In this document: one piece after another, positions 24,125 to 46,262 of the stretch
How the letters are laid out: every line of letters begins with the position of its first letter
Position numbering within the stretch: position 1 is the first letter of the stretch
Source: Piromyces finnis finn
Taxonomy: Eukaryota; Fungi; Neocallimastigomycota
DNA length: 64,000 bases
Assembly: GCA_002104945.1 (NCBI GenBank)
Contig: MCFH01000035.1
Span: 62,001-126,000, forward strand
Direction of reading: 5' to 3'
Program-made: the position numbers and the translations under genes
Notes under the pieces: model-generated
The model's database searches: none
What the model was told of the DNA's origin: nothing
What the model saw: the letters and a program-made list of their open reading frames with translations, nothing else

Positions 24125-25165
24125 ATGGCAGCATTAAATAATTTAAAAAATTGCTCATTAAAATTATTAAATAATACTACAAAAAATGTTATAGCTACCC
24201 AGTGCTTATCAAGAATTCCATTATTATCTGTTCCATGTAAAATTAATGTTTCAAAAAGATCTTTATTTACTTCAAACCTAGCAATTAAAAATAATTTTAA
24301 TGTCAAACAAAATATTTTCAACTTAAAGCAAGGTACTTTTGAGATAGAGATTAAATAAATATATATAAGTATAATAATTATATTTAAAATAAATCTCATT
24401 TTAAATAAGTCTCTATTTATATATTATTATTAACAACACTAACATTTTTAATTAATTAATAAATTGTGAAGCTCGTAGTATGTTTATTGATGTTGGTAAA
24501 TATTATAAAGCTATACTTTTTATAAATATCTTTTTCTTTTTATAATATAATATATGAAAGAATGAAGTGACGTGTATATTAAATATAAAATTTTTAAAAT
24601 ATTATTAAAAGATGCTACACCAAATGTCAATACTTTAAAATTCAAGCCAAAAGGAGCAACTATTTTACCACAAAATCAAACTATGGAATTTTTAAGTTTA
24701 GAAACTGCAAGTGAAACTTCTCCACTTGCTGAAGAATTAATGGAAATTGAAGGTGTTCAATCTGTTTTATTTGGTAGTGATTTTATTTCAATTACAAAAG
24801 AATATGATGCTGAATGGCAAATGTTAAAACCAGATGTTTATGCAATTATTGCTGATTATATTGAATCAGGTGATCCAATATTATCAAATACAGATGGAAA
24901 AGTTAAACCAGTTACTCACACTAAGAAAGACAATGAAAATAGCACTGTTAATGAAATAAAAGAATTAATTGAACATAGAATTAGACCATCAATTCAACTT
25001 GATGGTGGTGATGTTGAATATGTTGATTATATAGATAATGTTGTTTATGTAAAATTATTAGGTGCTTGCCGTTCCTGCAGTATGGCTGAACTTACTTTAA
25101 AACAAGGCATTGAAAACATGTTAAAGCATTACATTCCTGAAATTAAGAGTGTTGAAAAAGTTTAG
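24125..25165 (+). CDS. NFU1: NFU1 iron-sulfur cluster carrier with presequence, 3 exons
   Basis: RSMFIDV|DATPNVNTLKF N-terminal domain. NifU C-domain IKELIEHRIRPSIQLDGGDVEY with the CxxC motif LGACRSC. Basic N-terminal leader. Confidence 0.95.
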
Positions 25166-25998: not shown

Positions 25999-28384
25999 TT
26001 AGATATTATTAAGACTGGATTCACTCCTCATTAGATCATTTACTTTTTCTGCTGGTAAAATTTTAATATTCTTTCTTTTGTTAGTTATTTTTAATATTCT
26101 TGGTAAGAAGATTTCACTTAATAATTCAATTTCAACAATAATTAAAGTTAGTATAAGTAAAACTGTAACAGGGATTTTAATATAGTTGAATATTAAGAAA
26201 AGAAGGATAAGTGAAATTTGGAAAAGGAAAATAAAAAAGGAATGAATTGTTAAAGAACTATTAATATAAGTTGTAATAACAGCATTATTATTCATTTCAC
26301 TTATATTATTTGCAATTTTTTCATTACTACATTTATCAATAATATTTTGAGCTTTTGGGTTTGCAAAACTTTTATTATTAGCTAAATCCATAATTGAATT
26401 TTTTAAGCTGTCCTTTTTTAATCTATAAAAATTTTCTTTTCTTAATTTTAGTTGTTCACTATTTATACTGGCTTTTGAATCCATTTTTAATAAATTTTTT
26501 CTATTCATATTATTATTTATAGCACTTTCAATATTAGTTTCACTATTTGTTGTAACTTTTGAATTACTTTCACCATTTGCTTCATCATTATTGAAGTCAA
26601 TACTTGATTTAATAACATTTTGATTTTCTGTTGAATTATTTGTATTTATACTTTTTGTTGATGCTGAAATATTTGTTTTTTTGATATTTTCATAACTATT
26701 ATTTTCATTTGAAGAATTATCGATAATGGTTGAAGATGTATAGCGATGAAGAAATTTCATGAGAAAAACAGAAATAAATGTAAGTAAAAAGGCAACCGCT
26801 AACAAAGCTTTTATTTCATCAATTGAATGAACAGCTTTACCTAGATTAATGTTATTATTTCTTGAATGCACTTCCTCACTTGTTGATTGACTTTTAAATT
26901 TATCTGACGTATAAAAAATTTCTAATCCAGAATAATAAGAAGAAGGAAGTTTGGGAGAAAGAGTTTCATCAAATGTATTATTAGGGTAATTACGATATAC
27001 ATATATATTTTTAACTATGATTGAAAGGCTAACACCAATTAGTGTTAAACCTAAATGTAATGGTAAATGTAAAAGTCTCCAAATACAACCAAAAAAAGGG
27101 GAAATTAGATTTAAAGCATGATTAATAGTTAGCACACTATTAACTGAATTATAAATATACCCAGAACTAATCACAATTATTCCACATATTATTGTATATA
27201 TAATGTTATGAATTGTAATGGAAAAACTGTATGATGGTATGAATACTACTGGGATAACTATTTATTTTATTGAAGATATTTAATAAAATAAATTAGAAAT
27301 GAGGTTTATTTAATAAGATTAATTGACATATTAAGAAATATCATTTATATTTAAACATTTATAAATACATATTTATTTTTATACCTATAAGGAGAAGAGT
27401 TAACAATGTAAAACGCTCAATCCAATTTTTTTTGTTAAAAATTGGAAATTTATCAGTGTTGCCACTTCCTGTGGAAAGCATATTGAGAGTAGCATATAAT
27501 CGACTTTGGATAAACACAATTATTACAAAAAACAGTATATCTATTATAAATGTTGTGTAATATATAACATATTTTTCTGTTACAGATTTTTTTATGAAAA
27601 TAGATATAATGAGTGGAGTTAATGCTACTATGGAATACATTGGAAGACATACTAATAGATATTTTGGTCCAGGGGCTGCCATAATATATGTTACAACACA
27701 GTATAAGCGAATAATAATTGACATAATAATAAAGAAATTGAAAAATGCATTGGGCTTTTTAATTTCAGATATGACATCTTCTCTTATACAAAATATCATC
27801 AAAATATATGATCCATATTTAATAATATGACTTAACCAACTTATACATTCTGGAAATCCAATTAAATCAGAGTGATGTGATAAAATAAACCAATGCCTAT
27901 AATTAACATTATAAATGGTTTTATCATGGTATCGATTGAATTGAAGAAAAATATTATAAATATAAATATATTAAAATAGCATTAGTAAATTTTATATATT
28001 ATTTTGAATACAATAATTTTTGAGGAATACTTCATTTTTTTTATAATATAATTCTAAAAATTGATATTAAATTACTTACTCCCATATGTAAATAAAAAAA
28101 ATAATAATACCAAAGAAAAATGTATTATTAAATGTGTTATTCAAAAGAATGTTTGCTAAAAATTATTTATATAATATATCAAGCTTTATTAATAAAGATT
28201 ACATAATCAAATATTATACTAGCATTAAATGATATACGAATTAATATATACCAATTCTTAAAATTCCAAAGCCTAATATGAAATCTAGTAGTATCTATTA
28301 AATATCAATATTATATATATTAATATATTGAAACACACCACCTAATCTATCAATGATACTAATTTAATTTTCAATAAAAATCAT
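25999..28384 (-). CDS. Multi-pass membrane protein, LtrA (low-temperature requirement A)-like; 5' exon structure uncertain
   Basis: Recognisable segments: LLDFILGFG (cf. ELFFDLVFV), FNRY, NWIERFTLLTLLL (cf. HLxERxGLFTIIVLG), GYIY, HALN..WRLLHLPLHLGL (cf. WxYLHLPL). A long Asn/Ser-rich loop precedes the last TM helices. Confidence 0.55.
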
Positions 28385-29393: not shown

Positions 29394-31124
29394 TTAATGT
29401 TTTCTAAAATCTTTACAATATATAGGACCAATATTATAAAGATTTGTTTTTAATTCATTTTCTTGGATATTGCATGATAAAACAAAAGCATTCTTTTTTT
29501 TCTTAAGTGGTCGTAAATACTTATTAAGATTTTGATTCCAAAGTGATACTAAACGATCTGTATCAAAGTCAATTTTTTCGGTTGGGTCATTCTCAAATGA
29601 AAGAATGGTTAAAAAATCTTCAAAGATTGTCGCTTGAGTAATATCTACAGATTTTGAAGTGTAATCTGGCGTAGAAGAAATATAACTATCTTCTTGTAGG
29701 GAATCACCATTGGATTCATTTGCTGTTGATAATGCTAACTTAAACGGATCTGTCTTTCTTAAATGATTTTGAACCATTGATAATGTAATTTGTCTAGTAA
29801 TAGGTTTACGACCTCTTTTTCGTTTTAACCCACCTCTAATCTTGATAAAATCTTCAGGTTTATATTGTCCGTAAAATTGCTTAGTTGAATGAATATCTAA
29901 AAAAACATATATTGAATTAAATTTTGAATTAGTTGAAAAAGATGATGATGGTGAATAAGCAGGTGATGAAGACATTTCTTGACTGTCTCTATAAGTATCA
30001 TTTGTTGTATCTTGAAGAATTAATTGAATAGGAGAGTAGACAAAAGTTAATTCTTTCATATGATGACAATGTTTCCAAAAGGCTTTTTGAATTATAAATC
30101 CAATAAAATAATTTATTTTTTGATCAATAGTATTTTTAAATTTTATTCCGTTAATGAATGAAGTAATGTTAGTAGCTTCTTGTTGAAATAGAAATTCATT
30201 ACATTTATTACAATAAATTTGAATGGTATCTAATATATCATCTACAGAATCTCTTTTTTTAGTACTTCTATATGAATTCGTTGATTCTATTGGATATTCT
30301 AAAGGTATTGAATTATTTGTTCGATTAAAAATGATTTTTGATATGAAAGCATCCACACTTGCTAAACCTATAATAATAAAATTTATATATAAATAAAAAA
30401 AATAAAATAAAAATTAATAAATAATCAAAATAGAATGTTTATAAGTTTATATATTAATTAATATATTATATATTTATATTACCATTATATCTTGATTTTA
30501 TTAGTGATTCAATGGTATCAAAATCTTTTGGTTTAATGGCTTTTGAATATTCAATTAGTTTTTCTTGAATATTTATTGGTATATTACTGGATGCTTTAAT
30601 TCTAGTATATTTTGTCGCATATAAAACTAGTTCTAATATTTAAAATTTAATATAAATAATTAAAAATAAATAAGAAAGTAGGAAAATAAGTAATTAATAA
30701 TGCATACCATTGTTTGATTCTTCATGAATAATCAAATCAAAGAAATCATACATTTGCTGTTCATTAATATGAATGTATTGAAGGAGATCAGATAATATCA
30801 TTAAACTATTATTTTAGTAAAGATCATTAAGTAATAACAATTAATAATTTAAATAATAATAGCTTATAAATTAAAAATTATATATTATACATTTGAATAG
30901 TAGCTTTATTATTATCAACATCTATAATTTCAACTTTCCATAATTCATAAGTTTCATTATCATCGCTTATTTTTATATCTTTCATACTACTGATAGGTAT
31001 TCCTTGAATATTAATACATTTATTTTTGTAATTTACTAATTGTTTTACAGTAACAAAAGTAGAAAAAGTGGGTGGTGTTTCAGTATTAAATTGATCTGAA
31101 TCTATATATTTAATTTTTAATTAC

Positions 31125-31170
<46 letters not shown>

Positions 31171-34100
31171 CATTTATTATATATTTTTATGATTTTTCAA
31201 TAACAGATATTTATACTATTTTTACCTTTAAATAAAAATTTTGTAAATAGATCATTTTTAGTCCAATTTTGGATTTCTAATACTCTGTTTGTAATTTCAG
31301 AATTGACTGTTAAAATTTTGAATTTATATATATATATATATTTTTTTTAAAAAAAAAAAAAAAACATTTTATAAATATTAATAAAAATACTATTATAGAT
31401 AATATCATAATATCATATTTTTAAATTACTTACTGTTATTAAGATTGATGGTGCTTTTACCATTAATGTTTTTAATAATAAAAAATCGTGATGAATAGTT
31501 ATTATTTCCCCAGCCTACAGTATTTGCCATTACTTTATTTTTATATTTTGAAAGCGTTAAATTAACAAATAAAATAATATCTCCTACAGTAATTTTTTCA
31601 ACCCAACTACTATTATTTCTCCAAAAAATTATAGGAAAAAAAGAGTGAGATTGATCTGAAATTAAAACAGAAGAAATTCGTATTGATGTATCTGTGCTAT
31701 CAAAAATATTGATAGCTTTACTTTTATCTTTTGGTTGAATGGTATCTGTATTATTTTTATGAACAACTACTCCAATGAAATTATATTTCTTTTTGGGTTT
31801 ATAATTTTTAAAATTATTAAATGGTTGCTCATTTTTAAAAGTTTGGTTTGTTTGAAGTTCAACTTCATATTGTTTTACCAAAAAATCCAATGAATCGACA
31901 ATTTCAATATCGGGTGGAAGAATCATTGGATAATACTTATCTTCTTCTAAAGGATTATCTTCAAATGATGAAATAGATGAAATTGTTTTAGGTATAGAAC
32001 TAGGTAATCCAAAATCTCTAGGATTACTTGATTGAGAAGAAATCATATTTTGAAGTTTACTTGGAGAATGATTAGGTGCATTAATAAATGTCATTGAATT
32101 TAAAGAATGTCCATTTATTTCTTTTTGGGTGGAAGGGCTAGTAGAAGAATTCGAAGGAATTATCTTATTTGAGCTTTCATTCAAATTTTTATTCACTATA
32201 ATGCTATTTTCATTAATTTTACTTTTATTAATTTGAATACTCTGATCTTTTGAATTAAAAATATAGTTTTGGACAAATGGTGTTGGTGTACTCATTACAA
32301 AAGAGTGTTCTGGAGAAATAATAAATTCTGGATTAATACCAATATTGATAAACGAATTATCTTTATAATTATTTGAATCTGAAGGATGTTTTGTTTTATC
32401 ATGAATTTCTTTATTAAAGGACGTATTTGAAAATTTATTGATAGGCGTTTTTGCATGAGATGGGGAAACAATTAAACCGGAAATGTCATTTAATTTATTA
32501 GTATCAGATAAATTAGAAAATTTTCTATTTGACTCATTTTCATTATTTAATTTATTATCTAAGGAAAGATCGCCAAATGCTGGTCCCAAATCCTCTTTTA
32601 TTTCTTTTTCAGATAGCAATGATAAATCGTCACTATCTCTGGGTTTAAGGACAGGAATAGGTGAAGAGTAAAATATATAATTGCTATCACTAGACTTTTG
32701 GCTAGGTATAGACACAATTTCCTTATTGTTTAAGCCTTTCTTTTTATTTAATATTTCTCTAGAACTATTTACTTTTAAATCATCTAAAATATTTTCAGTA
32801 ATTATGTTTTCATTTAGATTATCAAAAATATTAGTTTTATCAAGATACTCTTCAATGAAGTTATTAATAATATTTTCTTCATAAGTTTCATTCTCTATAA
32901 ATGATTTAGATGGATTGTCAATAAATATATTACTATCTGTTTTAACTAATTCTGGATAATTTTCATTTTTGGATATAAAATGAGAAATTACTGGACTGTG
33001 CAATTCATATTCGGAATTATTTTTATTGTATTCAATATCTAGCGCTTTTGTTAGTAATTTTTTTTCTATCATTTTGTTTTTACTTACGTTATTGAGGGGA
33101 TTGTCTTTAATTTCATTATTTTTCTTCTCTATATCATTTTCATATATTTTTGTGTTAACCTTTTCATTTTCATCAATTTTTTCTTTATTGACTGTTATTG
33201 AATTGTCATTTACTTTTATAATAATTTCAGGAGATAAAAGGTCATCTTGATATAGCCTAGGTGAAAATAACGGATTAGTACTAGAGCATTGACTATTATT
33301 TATACTTTGATCCTGGTCTTCTTGAATAATTTCATCATTTTGATTTTGAGATATTTCTTTCATAAGTATTATTATTAAACAATAAATTGTTAAAGCTTTA
33401 GTATATAAAATTATATATATTTTTTAAATGAATTTTATTAATAATATATTATTATATATACTTATTTCTTCGATGTCTTGATTCATAGATTTATCATCAA
33501 TTATTTGTTCTTGGTCTTTGTTTAAATTTGAACTTATATTAAAATAACTCATAATATTTTTATTTTGATCCATTAAATTATTTTCTTTTTTATTAGGTGT
33601 ATAGATTGGTGTTTTGTCTTTATTTTCTGGTGCATTTAATTTAGTTTGAGAGTATAAGTTTGTTTTTGGTAATAAAAGATCAGGAGTTTTTATAGAATTT
33701 TTAATTTGATTGGAATGAAAATGAGAGTCTAAATCCTTATTTGACGAAATCTTTAAATTACCAGATGCATTACTTTTAGCTTTTTTAAGTTCTGGCGATA
33801 GTAACATATCATTATCTGGGGAAAGAAGATCTAGTTCTTGAGAATTTGAAATTATTTGATTTAAGCTTATGTTATTACGATTTGATAATGGCGATTCAAT
33901 GTTAATTTCCATTTTTTGAGTTTCTGTATTTAATTCTTGTCCAAAGTTATTTTCCGGGGATAGAAGTTCTTTTCCTTGAGAAGACATTCCTTCATGTTCT
34001 TCTATCATTACTTCATCAGCATTTTCCAATAACTCTTTCTGTGTTTCTATTAATTGTTGCATTCTTGGAGATAATATTTCATCTTGTGATAGTATTTTTG

Positions 34101-36472
34101 GTGATACATTATACTGATTACTTCTAGGTGATATTAATTCTTCCTCTTGAGAAGCTATTTTTTGAGTATCCATATAGCGATGAATATCAGAAGGTGATAT
34201 AAATATGAAGTCTTGTGATTGTTGTTGTTTCTTATTTTCTAATTTATTTATAGGTATTGGTGAAAATGTTATTGATTCTTGTGATTGTTGCTGTTTTTGA
34301 TTTTCCAATTTATTTAGATGTATTGGTGAAAATATTATTGATTCTTGTGATTGTGATGGTATTTTTTGAGTATCCATATATTTATTATCTTTAGCATCAA
34401 TCATTTGTGTTGATATTTGAGTATCGATATAACTTTTATCCTTACTTTTTTCCTTATTATGTGGTGATATAAAATTATTAAATTCAGGAGATCCTATACT
34501 GGGTGATTCTAAGAAAATTGGATTGTATTCCTGAGATAAGGAATTCTTAATTTCATTATATTTATTTTTAGTTTTTGTATTTGATGTTAAATCAGAAACT
34601 GTTCTTCTAGATTTATTATTTATATTTGGCGTTTCCTCATCAGATTCTGATGCTAATACTTCATCTGAATCTGATTCTGAATTATTAATTTTTTTACGCT
34701 TTGGCGAAGAAAAGACATTAGAATTAATAATTACTGAATCATAATCATCTAATTGCAAGAATGAACGCTTATTAGATATATCATCATCATTTCCAATATC
34801 CTATTATAATATAATAATTAGCGTATTATATAATTATAAGCTTTTAATATTTTTTTTTACTTTATATTATATTTATAACTATCAATGATAATACTCGATA
34901 ACTTACAGAATAACTTCCATTAAAATTACTTAATGTGTATCCCAAAGAATTTTCAAATTCAGACTCGGTCTCAGGAATAATATTTTCATCAAATTCATTG
35001 TATTTATTTCTATTATCATCAATAGAAATGTCATTAAGATCTTGTATACAATCTTGTGTATCAGTTTCAATATATTCTTGAGTTGCAACATATGATGCTT
35101 CATAATTTTGAGTTTGTGTTACTTGAGAAAAGTCATTTGTTAATTCATATGGTTGAGTACTATTATTATTGTTATTTGGTAATAATAGATCATTTGGTTT
35201 AATAAAAGTTGGATTTTTAATTTTTGAAGAACTAGTAGAATCATTAGAAAGCTGTCTATTATCAGAATTCTCATCTTTATTAGGTATATTACTCATTAAT
35301 ATTGTATTAGTAAATTCATTTTCTTTTTTCATTATTAAATTGCTTTTTTCAATTGGAATAATATTTCTTAATTCCGCTTCATTTATAGGAATTGTATTAG
35401 GTAATTCATTTTCATTTATAGGAATTGTATTTGGAAATTCATTTTCATTTATAGGAATTGTATTAGGCAATTCATTTTCATTTATAGGAATTGTATTTGG
35501 AAATTCATTTTCATTATTTATAGGAATTGTATTAGGAAATTCATTTTCATTATTTATAGGAATTGTATTAGGAAATTCATTTCCATTATTTATAGGAATT
35601 GTATTAGGAAATTCATTTTCATTATTTATAGGAATTGTATTAGGAAATTCATTTTCATTATTTATAGGAATTGTATTAGGAAATTCATTTTCATTATTTA
35701 TAGGAATTGTATTAGGAAATTCATTTTCATTATTTATAGGAATTGTATTAGGAAATTCATTTTCATTATTTATAGGAATTGTATTAGGAAATTCATTTTC
35801 ATTATTTATAGGAATTGTATTAGGAAATTCATTTCCATTATTTATAGGAATTGTATTAGGAAATTCATTTCCATTATTTATAGGAATTGTATTAGGAAAT
35901 TCATTTTCATTATTTATAGGAATTGTATTAGGAAATTCATTTCCATTTACTGGAATAGTATTAGGTATTTTATTTTCATTTATTATTACTGCATTTAGTA
36001 ATTCATTTTCATTTATAGGGATAGTATTTGGTAATTCATTTTCATTTATTAGAACATTATTAGGAAACATATTTTTATTTGTTTGTATAACATTAGTAAA
36101 TTTATTTCCATTAATAGGAATAGTATTTAAAAGTTCAGTATCAGTTATTTCATTTTTATTAGCTATTTTTGCATTGATAGATACAATGTTTAATAAATCA
36201 TTAAATTTAAAATTAACTAATTCTGATTTTGATAGCTGCTGTTTCATTTTATCCTTATTAGTAAACATTTCCGGTATTTGATAAAAAAAATATAAAGAAG
36301 AATTCACTTTATATTTATGTTCCATAGGAACATCACCTTTCTTCTTTTCAAAGGAAAAATTTTCATTGGAAATATTATATTTGTCATTTATTAAATTTTT
36401 ATATTTTAGGTTTTTAGGAAAATTAAATTTTAAATAAACATCTTTTTGAATTCTTTTCCTTTGCATTGGCAT
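29394..36472 (-). CDS. Large protein with long disordered N-terminus and C-terminal OB folds resembling shieldin subunit 2 (SHLD2/FAM35A); multi-exon
   Basis: ORFs 34862-36472, 33424-34758 and 31426-33363 splice in frame (GT at 34906, AG before 34800; GT at 33461, AG before 33395 or inside ATGAAAG). First OB fold: KYNFIGVVV..VLISDQSHSFFPIIFWRNNSSWVEKITVGDIILFVN. Further small exons lie at ~31320-30480. The last exon has CNKC, YSPIQLILQD and FVLSCNIQENE. Confidence 0.65.
35370..36130. repeat. Coding minisatellite: ~12 copies of a 36-bp unit (NEFPNTIPINNE/G) flanked by degenerate 33-bp copies
   Basis: Unit taggaattgtattaggaaattcattttcattattta is visible on the + strand. The repeats are read directly in ORF 34862-36472. 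Confidence 0.97.
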
Positions 36473-43349: not shown

Positions 43350-46262
43350 ATGTCTCTATCTACCGAAAAGGAAGCAACAAAAATAATGGTTGCTGCAAGA
43401 CAATCAGCATTAAAAAGAATTTCAGAAATGTAATTATTAAAATTCATTAAATATTTACAATAATTGTGGTCTTTTATAATATAATAAGCCGGAATATAGA
43501 ATAACGAAGCTAATATATATAAATAAATAATTTATAATTTTTTAATAACTTATGGACTTAATAATATAAATTTTACTCAGCATGTTATTATATAATTTCC
43601 TAATTAATAACAAAATATAAAATATGTTATCTTCAACTATCTTCTTAATAATGCATTGAAGTTATATTGCTTCAATAATTCACTTTTTTATTGTATATAA
43701 AAAATAAAGAAAGAAAATAAAAAAAAAAAAAAAAATAGAAAAAAAATTAGAATCACATGAAATTAAATTTCAAAAATGTTTTATTTATTTAATATTATGA
43801 ATAATAATAAAAATAATATCTTTTTATATATTTTTTATTTATAATTTCTATATCTAATAATTTAAATATTAATACTCAATTATTAGTTTAAAACATCCAG
43901 ATGACCTTAATACCAAATTAGCAAGAACTCGACAAAAAATATATTTTGAAAAAGCATCTATTGATGCTCAAATGAAATCATTAGTACAGTCACAGTTGGA
44001 TGATTCACAACGTGGCTTGGAAATTCTTGATGAATCTAAGAAAGAAACAGCTATCATAAAAAAAAATTTAGAATCAATTGATTCTCTATGCCTTGATAGT
44101 CAAGGAATGATAAATAACTTTCCAGAAATAAAAAAAGTAATATAAAACTTATTTAAATATAAAAATAATGATAATAACCATTTTAAAAATAAATATATAT
44201 TAATAATTAAATAAAATTTTTTGTTGTTGTTTATTCAATATATTTAATAATAAATATATTAATAATATTATATATATATTATTTCATAATGAAATCATTG
44301 AAATATTCTTTCAATACTTAATTAAATATTAAAAAAAAAAAAAAAAAGTTATCAAAAGCAAGAACCAATTTTGTACATACAAAAGAAATGGTAGAAAGTT
44401 TCCTACATCTAGATGAAAAATTAAGTGTAATAGATCAACTTCTTACACAAGAAATAGAGAAAGAAAAATATGCCACAGAAATGCTTTTAGTTATTCATTT
44501 TAAAATTTCAGAATTAAAATTATTTCAAGAAAGAATTATGTATAAAGCTCAAACTTTATCATCAGATGAACGCTTAACTCTTGTAAATTATTTTTCAACA
44601 CTTAATCATCAAATAGAAAGTTTTGAAAAATACTTTTGGTCACTTGTCGAAAATATTTATGATGTATTAATAAACACAAATGTTAAATCAATCATTTATA
44701 TTTTAAAAATTATAGAGGCAGAAGAGCAATTTGATGATCGTCTTAAACATAATGATAAAACAAAAATGCTTCATAAAGCCAGCGGATATAGAGAAAAATT
44801 TTTCAATATTGTAAGTAAAGCAATTGATAAACGTTTTATGGAGCAGTTTCAATTCAAAGGTGAAGAAGGTGAAGAGGCATCGGTAGAAATTTTAGAACGT
44901 ACTGGTTTTATTATTGATGATTTAACCATGGTTCATGATGAATTCATTCCTAAATTCCCAAAAAAATATGCTATTTTTAATTATTTTATGTTAGAATACC
45001 ATCGTCATATGAAATCTGTCATGGATAGAATTATTGCGGATGTTTCAGATACCGGAGCCATTTTAATGATTCTTCGTTGGGTCCAAGAATATTATACCGA
45101 TATGAGTACACGTTTAGGAGTTGCTGAAGATTCATTGGAACCACAGCTTCTTGATGGTAAAGAAGATAAATTAATTAATGATTATCTTTCTTTGAATCAT
45201 CAAAAATCTGTAGAATGGATTACCAATATTATGAGTTCCGGTATTAAGCGTTTCAGTGAAAGAGAAGAACCACCAGAAGTTAATCCAAATGGTAATTATA
45301 ATCTCTCACTATCTGTGATCCTCTTCCAAATTATTAATCAACAAATTAATTTGGCAAAGTCTTCTAACCGTAGTGAATTGGCCTTTGATGTAGTTATGGA
45401 ATGTAAAAAAACCATTCGAATTTTCCAAAATGGATGGAAAGATACGGTTAATAAAGAATACCAATTTTATGTTAATTCTCCAGAAACCAGTCCTAAGGGT
45501 CTTCCAGAATATTTAATTGCCTTAGCAAATGATTGTTTATGGTGTTCAGAATATACTGAGGAAATTATCAAGGAAGTAAAGCATATCTTTAATGAAGAAG
45601 AAAATGAAAAAATTAGTAAAGAATTAGGTGAGGTACAAAAAGAATTTATGAATGTCTCCAAACGATGTATCTATATTTTAATTGAAATTATGATGATGGA
45701 TGTAAAGTCAACCTTCTCACAATTATACAGTCAGGGATGGTACGAAGAATCACAAATGAATGTAATTATTTGTACCTTACTTGATTATTGTGGTGATTTC
45801 CAAGAATATTTCCAAGAATATCTCTTTACTAAATTCATTACTGACTTAAATGAGCGTTTCGTTATTGCTTACTTGGAAGCATTTTCAAATCGTAATGCAA
45901 AATTAAAAATGCCAAGTTGTACTACAATTATTGAATCTGATATAAAGCAAGCAGAAGAATTCTTTAGTAATTATCGTTCATCGAAACGTGTTACTGAATC
46001 TTTCAAACCTATCCATTTATTTGTAGCCATGATTACTAGTAGTCCAACAATGATATTTTTGGATTATTATTCACTCTATAAAGAATATTCAGATGTTCCA
46101 TTGAATTTCATAGATAATGTTTTACATAAAAGAGATGATCTTCAAAATGTTCAAATTAAAGATATTATGGAACAGTGTAATCAAAAAGCAAAAGAAGAAA
46201 AAGAAAAAATGACAGATGCTACTAAAGAAATATCTTCTGTTTTCTCTAGATTGTCTATATAA
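43350..46262 (+). CDS. SEC6: Exocyst complex component Sec6/EXOC3, 3 exons
   Basis: N-terminal LKHPDDLNTKL..EKASIDAQMKSLVQSQLD, IEAEEQFD, IFNYFMLEYH, ILMILRWVQEY, YLIALAND, ICTLLDYCGDF. Helical 624-aa final exon. Confidence 0.9.

Follow-up and report, generated by a model that had tools for sequence, protein, structure and literature searches.

The closest described counterpart of the gene discussed here is SHLD2 (FAM35A), the subunit of the shieldin complex that binds single-stranded DNA (ssDNA). Animal SHLD2 proteins, about 600-900 residues long, begin with an extended disordered region and end in three oligonucleotide/oligosaccharide-binding (OB) folds. N-terminal strands of human SHLD2, including Phe10, bind SHLD3 and open REV7 (PMC7181697). 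Shieldin subunits other than REV7 have been described as absent from model organisms, yeast included, or as undetectable outside vertebrates, and alternative Rev7 mechanisms have for that reason been proposed for fungi (PMC11616998; bioRxiv 10.1101/2024.10.22.619677). The gene studied lies on the minus strand of a stretch of 64,000 nucleotides (hereafter the window) from the anaerobic fungus Piromyces finnis finn, of the Neocallimastigomycota (contig MCFH01000035.1, positions 62,001 to 126,000), and it encodes a protein of 2113 residues that is very probably, judging from sequence comparison, a true though divergent representative of the SHLD2 family. A role in shieldin-like protection of DNA ends is much less certain; family membership and such a role, taken jointly, are nevertheless the explanation that is favoured here, with somewhat better than even confidence.

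The first of the OB folds (OB1) carries the strongest evidence. The 222 residues at the end of exon 3 match the Pfam family SHLD2_OB1 (PF21669) with an E-value of 3e-13 and 50.1 bits, the curated cut-off being 26 bits, and the orthologous protein of Anaeromyces robustus (BCR32DRAFT_270421, here P0003) scores 49.6 bits with the same family. The resemblance of this fold to SHLD2_OB1 is far beyond chance. The other families that touch the same piece are POT1 (PF02765, 29.0 bits), CDC24_OB3 (19.1 bits), POT1PC (13.3 bits, with a cut-off of 27.2) and REPA_OB_2 (13.2 bits, with a cut-off of 27), so that the fold groups with SHLD2_OB1 and not with POT1, CDC24_OB3 or RPA. Neither membership of the POT1/TEBP-alpha proteins, from which it is set apart by the 21 bits that separate PF02765 from SHLD2_OB1 and by the C-terminal position of the OB folds, nor membership of RPA70, for which REPA_OB_2 stays far below its cut-off and the C-terminal half has no Rep_fac-A_C match, describes the protein.

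The same grouping was obtained in the reverse direction. A profile of anaerobic-fungal sequences (A1) was used in HMMER to search 1.84 billion representative proteins, which yielded 37 matches, nine of them anaerobic-fungal fragments and 28 from outside the anaerobic fungi. PF21669 is the best Pfam family of all 28, which align over OB1 only, and no POT1, RPA70, CTC1 or Cdc13 protein is found among the 37. Among the matches that carry names, the animal ones are Trichoplax TRIADDRAFT_54129, a Nematostella protein named 'shieldin complex subunit 2' and SHLD2 of the sponge Geodia barretti, and those of Trichoplax and Nematostella carry all three SHLD2 Pfam domains (PF21669, PF22779 and PF15793) above cut-off (Nematostella P0026 and P0042, Trichoplax P0011). 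The named fungal matches belong to the Chytridiomycota (Spizellomyces P0017, Borealophlyctis P0019, Powellomyces P0015 and Fimicolochytrium P0034) and to the Mortierellomycota (Dissophora P0012, Actinomortierella P0025 and Mortierella polycephala P0022). A maximum-likelihood tree of OB1 supports only the clades of each taxon without resolving their deep order and speaks neither for nor against vertical descent, although in it the anaerobic-fungal clade does not fall inside an animal clade.

The region after OB1 was compared between groups of relatives with hhalign, and a chain of profile links leads through it from the anaerobic fungi to animals. The set made of Anaeromyces, Pecoramyces and window sequences matches the combined chytrid and Mortierella set (95.7%, E 8.5e-9), this set matches the animal set over a span that includes SHLD2_C (91.9%, E 7e-7), and three unnamed relatives match the animal set as well (95.4%, E 1.9e-8). 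The anaerobic-fungal set against all the others combined gives 96.1% and E 3.2e-9, compared with 0.3% and E 0.21 for the reversed-sequence control. In the family-wide alignment A4, the shared co-linear blocks are F-x-S-I-x-x-L, G-x-A, CxxC, Y-x-P-x-x-L-x-L-x-D and the final strand. The third fold (OB3) begins with F-D-[ST]-I-E-x-L-I...G-L-A-x-V-x-A-F-I-x-K-I-I-F, and a strand Y-x-P-I-Q-L-I-L-Q-D is conserved further on. The second fold (OB2), with the strand block CINIQG...WKVEI..., is co-linear with its counterpart in chytrid and animal SHLD2, and none of the significant profile links covers this fold by itself. The insert of about 27 residues in the zinc ribbon of OB3 is found only in anaerobic fungi, as is HCHH in the position of the second CxxC.

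The predicted structure is consistent with a tandem-OB protein. AlphaFold2 was run on residues 95-724 of P0003 with an alignment of 33 rows (mean predicted local distance difference test score, pLDDT, 64), and the model shows OB1 at a pLDDT of about 90, a helix at 127-142 (exon 4) that links OB1 and OB2, OB2 as a beta-barrel over roughly residues 170-270 of the model (pLDDT 70-89), OB3 at 50-84 and a disordered tail. Three OB folds in tandem are thus predicted for the C-terminal 640 residues or so; their order is that of the DNA-binding domains A, B and C of RPA70, and a zinc ribbon is predicted in the last. Foldseek against the PDB retrieved RPA70, Oxytricha TEBP-alpha, POT1, Teb1, CTC1, BRCA2 and RADX at E-values from 1e-11 to 1e-7, the best solved structures being 9pd4_N and 4gop_C (both RPA70), 1ph1_A, 3kjo_A and 8sok_D, and the fold is therefore that of the tandem-OB ssDNA binders. 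In shape searches of the ESM Atlas, vertebrate SHLD2 came first in all three cases and clearly ahead in two of them: for the AlphaFold2 model it was aligned over 354 residues with a template modelling (TM) score of 0.38, compared with at most 0.30 for archaeal RPA and 0.26 for MEIOB, and for the Atlas model of P0003 residues 230-724, a part without OB1, its TM score was 0.46 compared with at most 0.31. A second AlphaFold2 model, of OB2 and OB3 only (pLDDT 56), again listed SHLD2 first, with a TM score of 0.36 over 266 aligned residues. The shape backs the tandem-OB reading, and the assignment to SHLD2 comes from the sequence.

Direct searches of databases with the C-terminal region gave little. 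In Pfam, nothing was found on the single exons after OB1 or on residues 230-724 of P0003, and the C-termini of the chytrid and Mortierella proteins have no Pfam match either; those of the three unnamed relatives match SHLD2_C or OB_SHLD2_2nd, always below threshold. Sequence searches of the PDB with the OB1 piece, exon 8, P0003 and profile A1 returned nothing useful, and a family-wide profile (A2) returned marginal, co-linear matches to RPA70 and POT1 (E 0.007-0.05).

The N-terminal part is dominated by about 1470 low-complexity or disordered residues that precede OB1. A module of about 100 residues at its start is conserved, and the long disordered part lies between this module and the C-terminal OB folds, which is the architecture of SHLD2. 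The repeat array of exon 1 encodes 12-residue units of the PNTIPIN type, NENEFPNTIPIN, and the related contig L002 also carries PNTIP[IV]N repeats; their spacers differ from those in the window, so the array evolves fast while its proline-rich core is kept. The whole protein contains 29 serine/threonine-glutamine (S/TQ) sites, compared with 14.4 +/- 3.4 in shuffled sequences, and 13 of them fall in one 200-residue stretch, for which the shuffled sequences reach 9 at most. A related protein (P0002) shows a similar S/TQ-rich stretch. Clusters of this kind are typical of the targets of ATM/ATR-type kinases.

An N-terminal strand motif, h-x-h-F-x-P-P, is common to the chytrid proteins P0017, P0019, P0015 and P0034, Nematostella P0042 and Trichoplax P0011, and it hints, without statistical backing, that the end of SHLD2 that docks partners may be ancient as well. 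The window protein has two stretches, VYLKFNFPKNL and ENFSFEKKKG, that can be aligned with these motifs of chytrids and Nematostella, though not significantly, and they are not its best site by position-specific scoring matrix (PSSM). That place is taken by the patch YYPMILPPDIEIV, likewise a non-significant match, which lies just before OB1 and might be a docking site. When the PDB was searched with a profile of the N-terminal motif, the SHLD2 peptide of the crystallised SHLD3-REV7-SHLD2 complex was not among the matches, and a feature search of the Atlas with residues 1-110 found nothing.

Several results weigh against the assignment to SHLD2 or weaken it. OB1 reaches the POT1 family exactly at its cut-off, and PF21669 also matches 16-76% of the members of some archaeal RPA-like clusters, so that a match to this model does not by itself single out SHLD2. 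The other two SHLD2 families, OB_SHLD2_2nd (PF22779) and SHLD2_C (PF15793), have no match at E <= 10 in the window exons or P0003. The direct hhalign comparison of the anaerobic-fungal set with the animal set is insignificant (4.9%, E 0.008), and the match of OB2 and OB3 to SHLD2, as far as sequence profiles indicate, is transitive only, by way of the chytrid and Mortierella intermediates. Structure alone would have no power to separate SHLD2 from RPA-like proteins over these two folds, judging from the OB2-OB3 model, for which archaeal RPA has a TM score of 0.37 compared with the 0.36 of SHLD2. The second zinc knuckle reads HCHH instead of CxxC, and the resemblance of the window protein's N-terminus to the strand motif of SHLD2 falls short of significance (PSSM P ~0.06, hhalign E 0.37).

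An earlier, sequence-only reading of the locus had proposed a distant SHLD2 relative with a very long disordered N-terminus, three OB folds and a CxxC in the last of them, and this is supported: the OB1 score, the 28 outside matches and the C-terminal profile chain all point to SHLD2, the disordered residues are followed by three predicted OB domains, and the Y-x-P-x-x-L-x-L-x-D strand and the C-terminal strand that it singled out are co-linear with those of chytrid and animal SHLD2 (A4, hhalign). Of the zinc ribbon, CNKC is present and aligned, and HCHH replaces the second knuckle. Compared with animal SHLD2, the window protein shares the order of its parts, an OB1 above the PF21669 cut-off, and a co-linear alignment of the OB3 start, the putative zinc ribbon and the last strands. 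On the other hand, it is far longer, its linker contains an array of 19 repeat copies as well as an S/TQ cluster, it has no direct PF22779 or PF15793 match, the altered knuckle follows a 27-residue insert, OB3 contains a large disordered insert, and the strands that bind SHLD3 and REV7 are not demonstrably conserved. The chytrid and Mortierellomycota proteins are also fungal, belong to the same OB1 family and have a related C-terminal region; they differ in their length of 500-1270 residues, in retaining both CxxC knuckles and, in the chytrids, in retaining the h-x-h-F-x-P-P motif. No experimental study of them was found in the literature.

The main rival accepts the family assignment and differs in function: a true SHLD2 homologue would in fungi bind ssDNA at telomeres or replication forks, in the manner of POT1, CTC1 or Cdc13, and would not form a shield that depends on 53BP1, RIF1 and REV7. 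This is unlikely. In its favour, POT1 comes second among the Pfam families for OB1, also reaching 25.9 bits in Actinomortierella, the feature-space neighbours of the C-terminal half include clusters of POT1, CTC1, MEIOB and Cdc24, TEBP-alpha and POT1 stand high in the Foldseek results, and no SHLD1 or SHLD3 partner is known in fungi, where published papers call shieldin subunits missing. Nevertheless, the DNA-binding OB folds of POT1 and TEBP are located at the extreme N-terminus, whereas those of the window protein follow the long disordered part, as in SHLD2, and the search of 1.84 billion proteins gave no POT1, CTC1 or Cdc13 protein.

A second possibility sets the family aside and takes the protein as a lineage-specific, RPA70-like tandem-OB paralogue, unrelated to SHLD2, whose OB1 cross-matches SHLD2_OB1 through the distant kinship of OB folds. 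RPA70 (DBD-A/B/C), POT1/TEBP-alpha and CTC1 do share the fold, the order of the OB domains and a zinc ribbon in the last, and the archaeal matches of PF21669, the equally good fit of the OB2-OB3 model to archaeal RPA and the weak, co-linear contacts of profile A2 with RPA70 and POT1 in the PDB are what such a paralogue would lead one to expect. A pure RPA-like paralogue is unlikely, however: SHLD2_OB1 leads POT1 by 21 bits and REPA_OB_2 by 37, none of the 28 outside matches is an RPA70 protein, the C-terminal half matches neither Rep_fac-A_C nor any REPA family, and it has its own, independent profile link to chytrid proteins and through them to animal SHLD2 C-termini. The sequence signal toward RPA70, POT1 and CTC1 is marginal with the family-wide profile and absent with the anaerobic-fungal one, and the domains are placed within the protein as in SHLD2, with neither an RPA70N domain nor the N-terminal OB placement of POT1.

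If the protein is a shieldin-type SHLD2, as favoured here, its role can be outlined by analogy. The family would go back to the ancestor that animals and fungi share and would have been kept in Neocallimastigomycota, Chytridiomycota and Mortierellomycota. The OB folds would bind ssDNA at resected double-strand breaks or chromosome ends, and the conserved N-terminal 100 residues, together with the long disordered linker, would tether this binder to upstream factors, possibly a REV7-type HORMA protein and damage-kinase signalling, the latter being proposed because the linker holds the S/TQ cluster. In this way the protein would restrict resection or favour fill-in and end joining. A further and more tentative proposal is that end protection of the shieldin type is older than the split between animals and fungi and continues to work as a module in early-diverging fungi, and that the SHLD2 of anaerobic fungi absorbed recruitment functions into its 1470-residue N-terminus. 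If so, the docking module, the 19-copy array and the S/TQ cluster would do in a single polypeptide the work of SHLD3, RIF1 and 53BP1 in vertebrates.

The sequence-only reading had also held that no such module is characterised in fungi, which is true of the literature, where no paper describing a fungal SHLD2 was found, and less so of the databases, which already name fungal homologues automatically: 'Shieldin complex subunit 2' is the UniRef name of P0003 and the GenBank name of several chytrid and Mortierellomycota proteins. The gene is therefore a very divergent further member of a known family, and its significance is tempered by this automated annotation and by the conditional nature of its function. 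The presence of SHLD2-family proteins in three early-diverging fungal phyla, as well as in sponges, placozoans and cnidarians, makes the ssDNA-binding subunit at least as old as the opisthokonts, an age that is visible in databases and apparently unpublished, while the model yeasts studied so far evidently have no SHLD2-family subunit. The origin of the 53BP1-RIF1-shieldin axis thus becomes testable in fungi, and transformation is possible in some chytrids, Spizellomyces among them. A different and presumably unrelated fungal protein, Njf1 of Cryptococcus, has been described as a 'shieldin-like' factor of non-homologous end joining that binds Rev7, Rif1 and Rev3, with a proposed action downstream of a 53BP1/Rad9-type protein (bioRxiv 10.1101/2024.10.22.619677). 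It resembles the window protein in being fungal and in this proposed shieldin-like action, and differs in that it is reportedly detectable in basidiomycetes only and reportedly captures Rev7 as SHLD3 does.

The gene was modelled from the sequence as eight exons separated by seven GT-AG introns (Table 1), giving a coding sequence of 6342 nucleotides with no internal stop. Four long open reading frames (ORFs) and four short exons are joined in a single frame; the minus-strand ORFs of the region are of 536, 444 and 645 residues, with a terminal one of 320 residues and several short coding pieces. Base composition is 15-30% GC over the region and 8-15% in the spacers, and the ATG of exon 1 is preceded by intergenic DNA of 8-12% GC. 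The best homologues of the protein are from Anaeromyces and Pecoramyces and, with the base composition, point to Neocallimastigomycota. Four sequencing runs from one organism, putatively of RNA, contain 0.45-0.81 of the sampled sequence words. P0003 (724 residues) is about 62% identical to it, and its splicing is identical across exons 3-8; its short N-terminus is an artefact, as the gene reaches within 439 nucleotides of the end of its contig. A second relative, P0004 (441 residues), spans exons 5-8 with the same residues at the junction of exons 7 and 8, and its contig of 1390 nucleotides leaves no room for three introns, so that it looks like a spliced transcript. The sequence-only reading, whose quoted peptides were all located on the minus strand, depended on the downstream exons being spliced to OB1, and this is borne out in relatives. 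P0002 is continuous over the join of exons 2 and 3 and favours the acceptor at 33356 over an alternative at 33395. On the JGI contigs L002 and L003, a 511-residue orthologue of exon 1 lies about 170 nucleotides upstream of the exon 2-3 ORF, co-linear and co-oriented with it; exon 1 matches the L002 ORF with an E-value of 1e-61, its first 100 residues or so being well kept. The start of exon 2, KRSFLQLD, is conserved and preceded by AG in related contigs.

That the 7-kb span might be two genes or a decaying one, with the repeat-rich exons 1-2 separate from an OB protein made of exons 3-8, is unlikely and the weakest of the alternatives, for the A. robustus model that begins just 95 residues ahead of OB1 is truncated by its contig end, and the division of L002 into products of 511 and 1062 residues comes from a prokaryote-style gene caller, whereas P0002 carries exon 2 and exon 3 sequence within one ORF, the exon 1 orthologue and the AG-preceded KRSFLQLD keep their places in L002 and L003, every junction is in frame with canonical sites, and a promoter of this genome would not fit into gaps of 60-110 nucleotides.

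Table 1. Features of the SHLD2-like gene, in positions of the window
Feature	Position	Strand	Remarks
Whole gene	29394..36472	-	8 exons, 2113 codons + stop; exon order backed by P0003, P0004, P0002 and L002
Exon 1	36472..34907	-	residues 1-522; GTAAGT donor
Exon 2	34800..33462	-	residues 523-968; disordered
Exon 3	33356..31434	-	residues 969-1609; disordered with conserved patches, then OB fold 1
Exon 4	31306..31226	-	27 residues; phase-1 GT-AG exon; aligned with P0003
Exon 5	31101..30891	-	part of OB fold 2
Exon 6	30805..30708	-	part of OB fold 2
Exon 7	30632..30483	-	end of OB fold 2, then start of OB fold 3
Intron 7	30482..30368	-	between exons 7 and 8
Exon 8	30367..29394	-	rest of OB fold 3
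Conserved N-terminal module	36472..36173	-	about 100 residues; kept in the L002 orthologue
Tandem repeat in exon 1	35381..36046	-	36 nt x 19; Tandem Repeats Finder: 90% matches, score 1024
S/TQ cluster in exon 2	34536..33841	-	residues 611-842
Patch YYPMILPPDIEIV	31935..31897	-	just before OB1, in a block strongly conserved among anaerobic fungi; candidate docking site
OB fold 1 (SHLD2_OB1 domain)	31434..31800	-	Pfam match spans 31800..31525
KYNFIGVVV	31788..31762	-	quoted peptide located
FFPIIFWRNNSSW	31641..31603	-	quoted peptide located
VGDIILFVN	31587..31561	-	quoted peptide located
OB fold 2	30560..31101	-	exon 5, exon 6 and part of exon 7 (30632..about 30560)
OB fold 3	29394..30543	-	end of exon 7 (30543..30483) + exon 8; zinc ribbon, long disordered insert, C-terminal closing strands
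First zinc knuckle, CNKC	30212..30201	-	aligns with the first CxxC in SHLD2 proteins of chytrids, Mortierellomycota and animals
HCHH, in place of second CxxC knuckle	30060..30071	-	after lineage-specific insert of ~27 residues; alignment A4 and hhalign
YSPIQLILQD	30038..30009	-	quoted peptide located
C-terminal strand FVLSCNIQENE	29486..29454	-	aligned with last strand of chytrid/Nematostella SHLD2, A4 columns about 760-780; low model confidence

Two of the introns contain (AT)n microsatellites on the minus strand, intron 4 at 31130-31170 and intron 3 at 31320-31345. Downstream of the SHLD2-like gene, a gene with no Pfam match is found at 25999-27802 on the minus strand, followed by an NFU1-type iron-sulfur scaffold gene with Nfu_N and NifU domains at 24572-25165 on the plus strand. 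The same gene order and orientation are found on contig MCFG01000233 (L001) of Anaeromyces robustus, and the locus is therefore syntenic with that species. Elsewhere in the window, a full-length, intronless ORF of 624 residues at 44388-46262 on the plus strand encodes the exocyst subunit Sec6 (Pfam E 1e-114).

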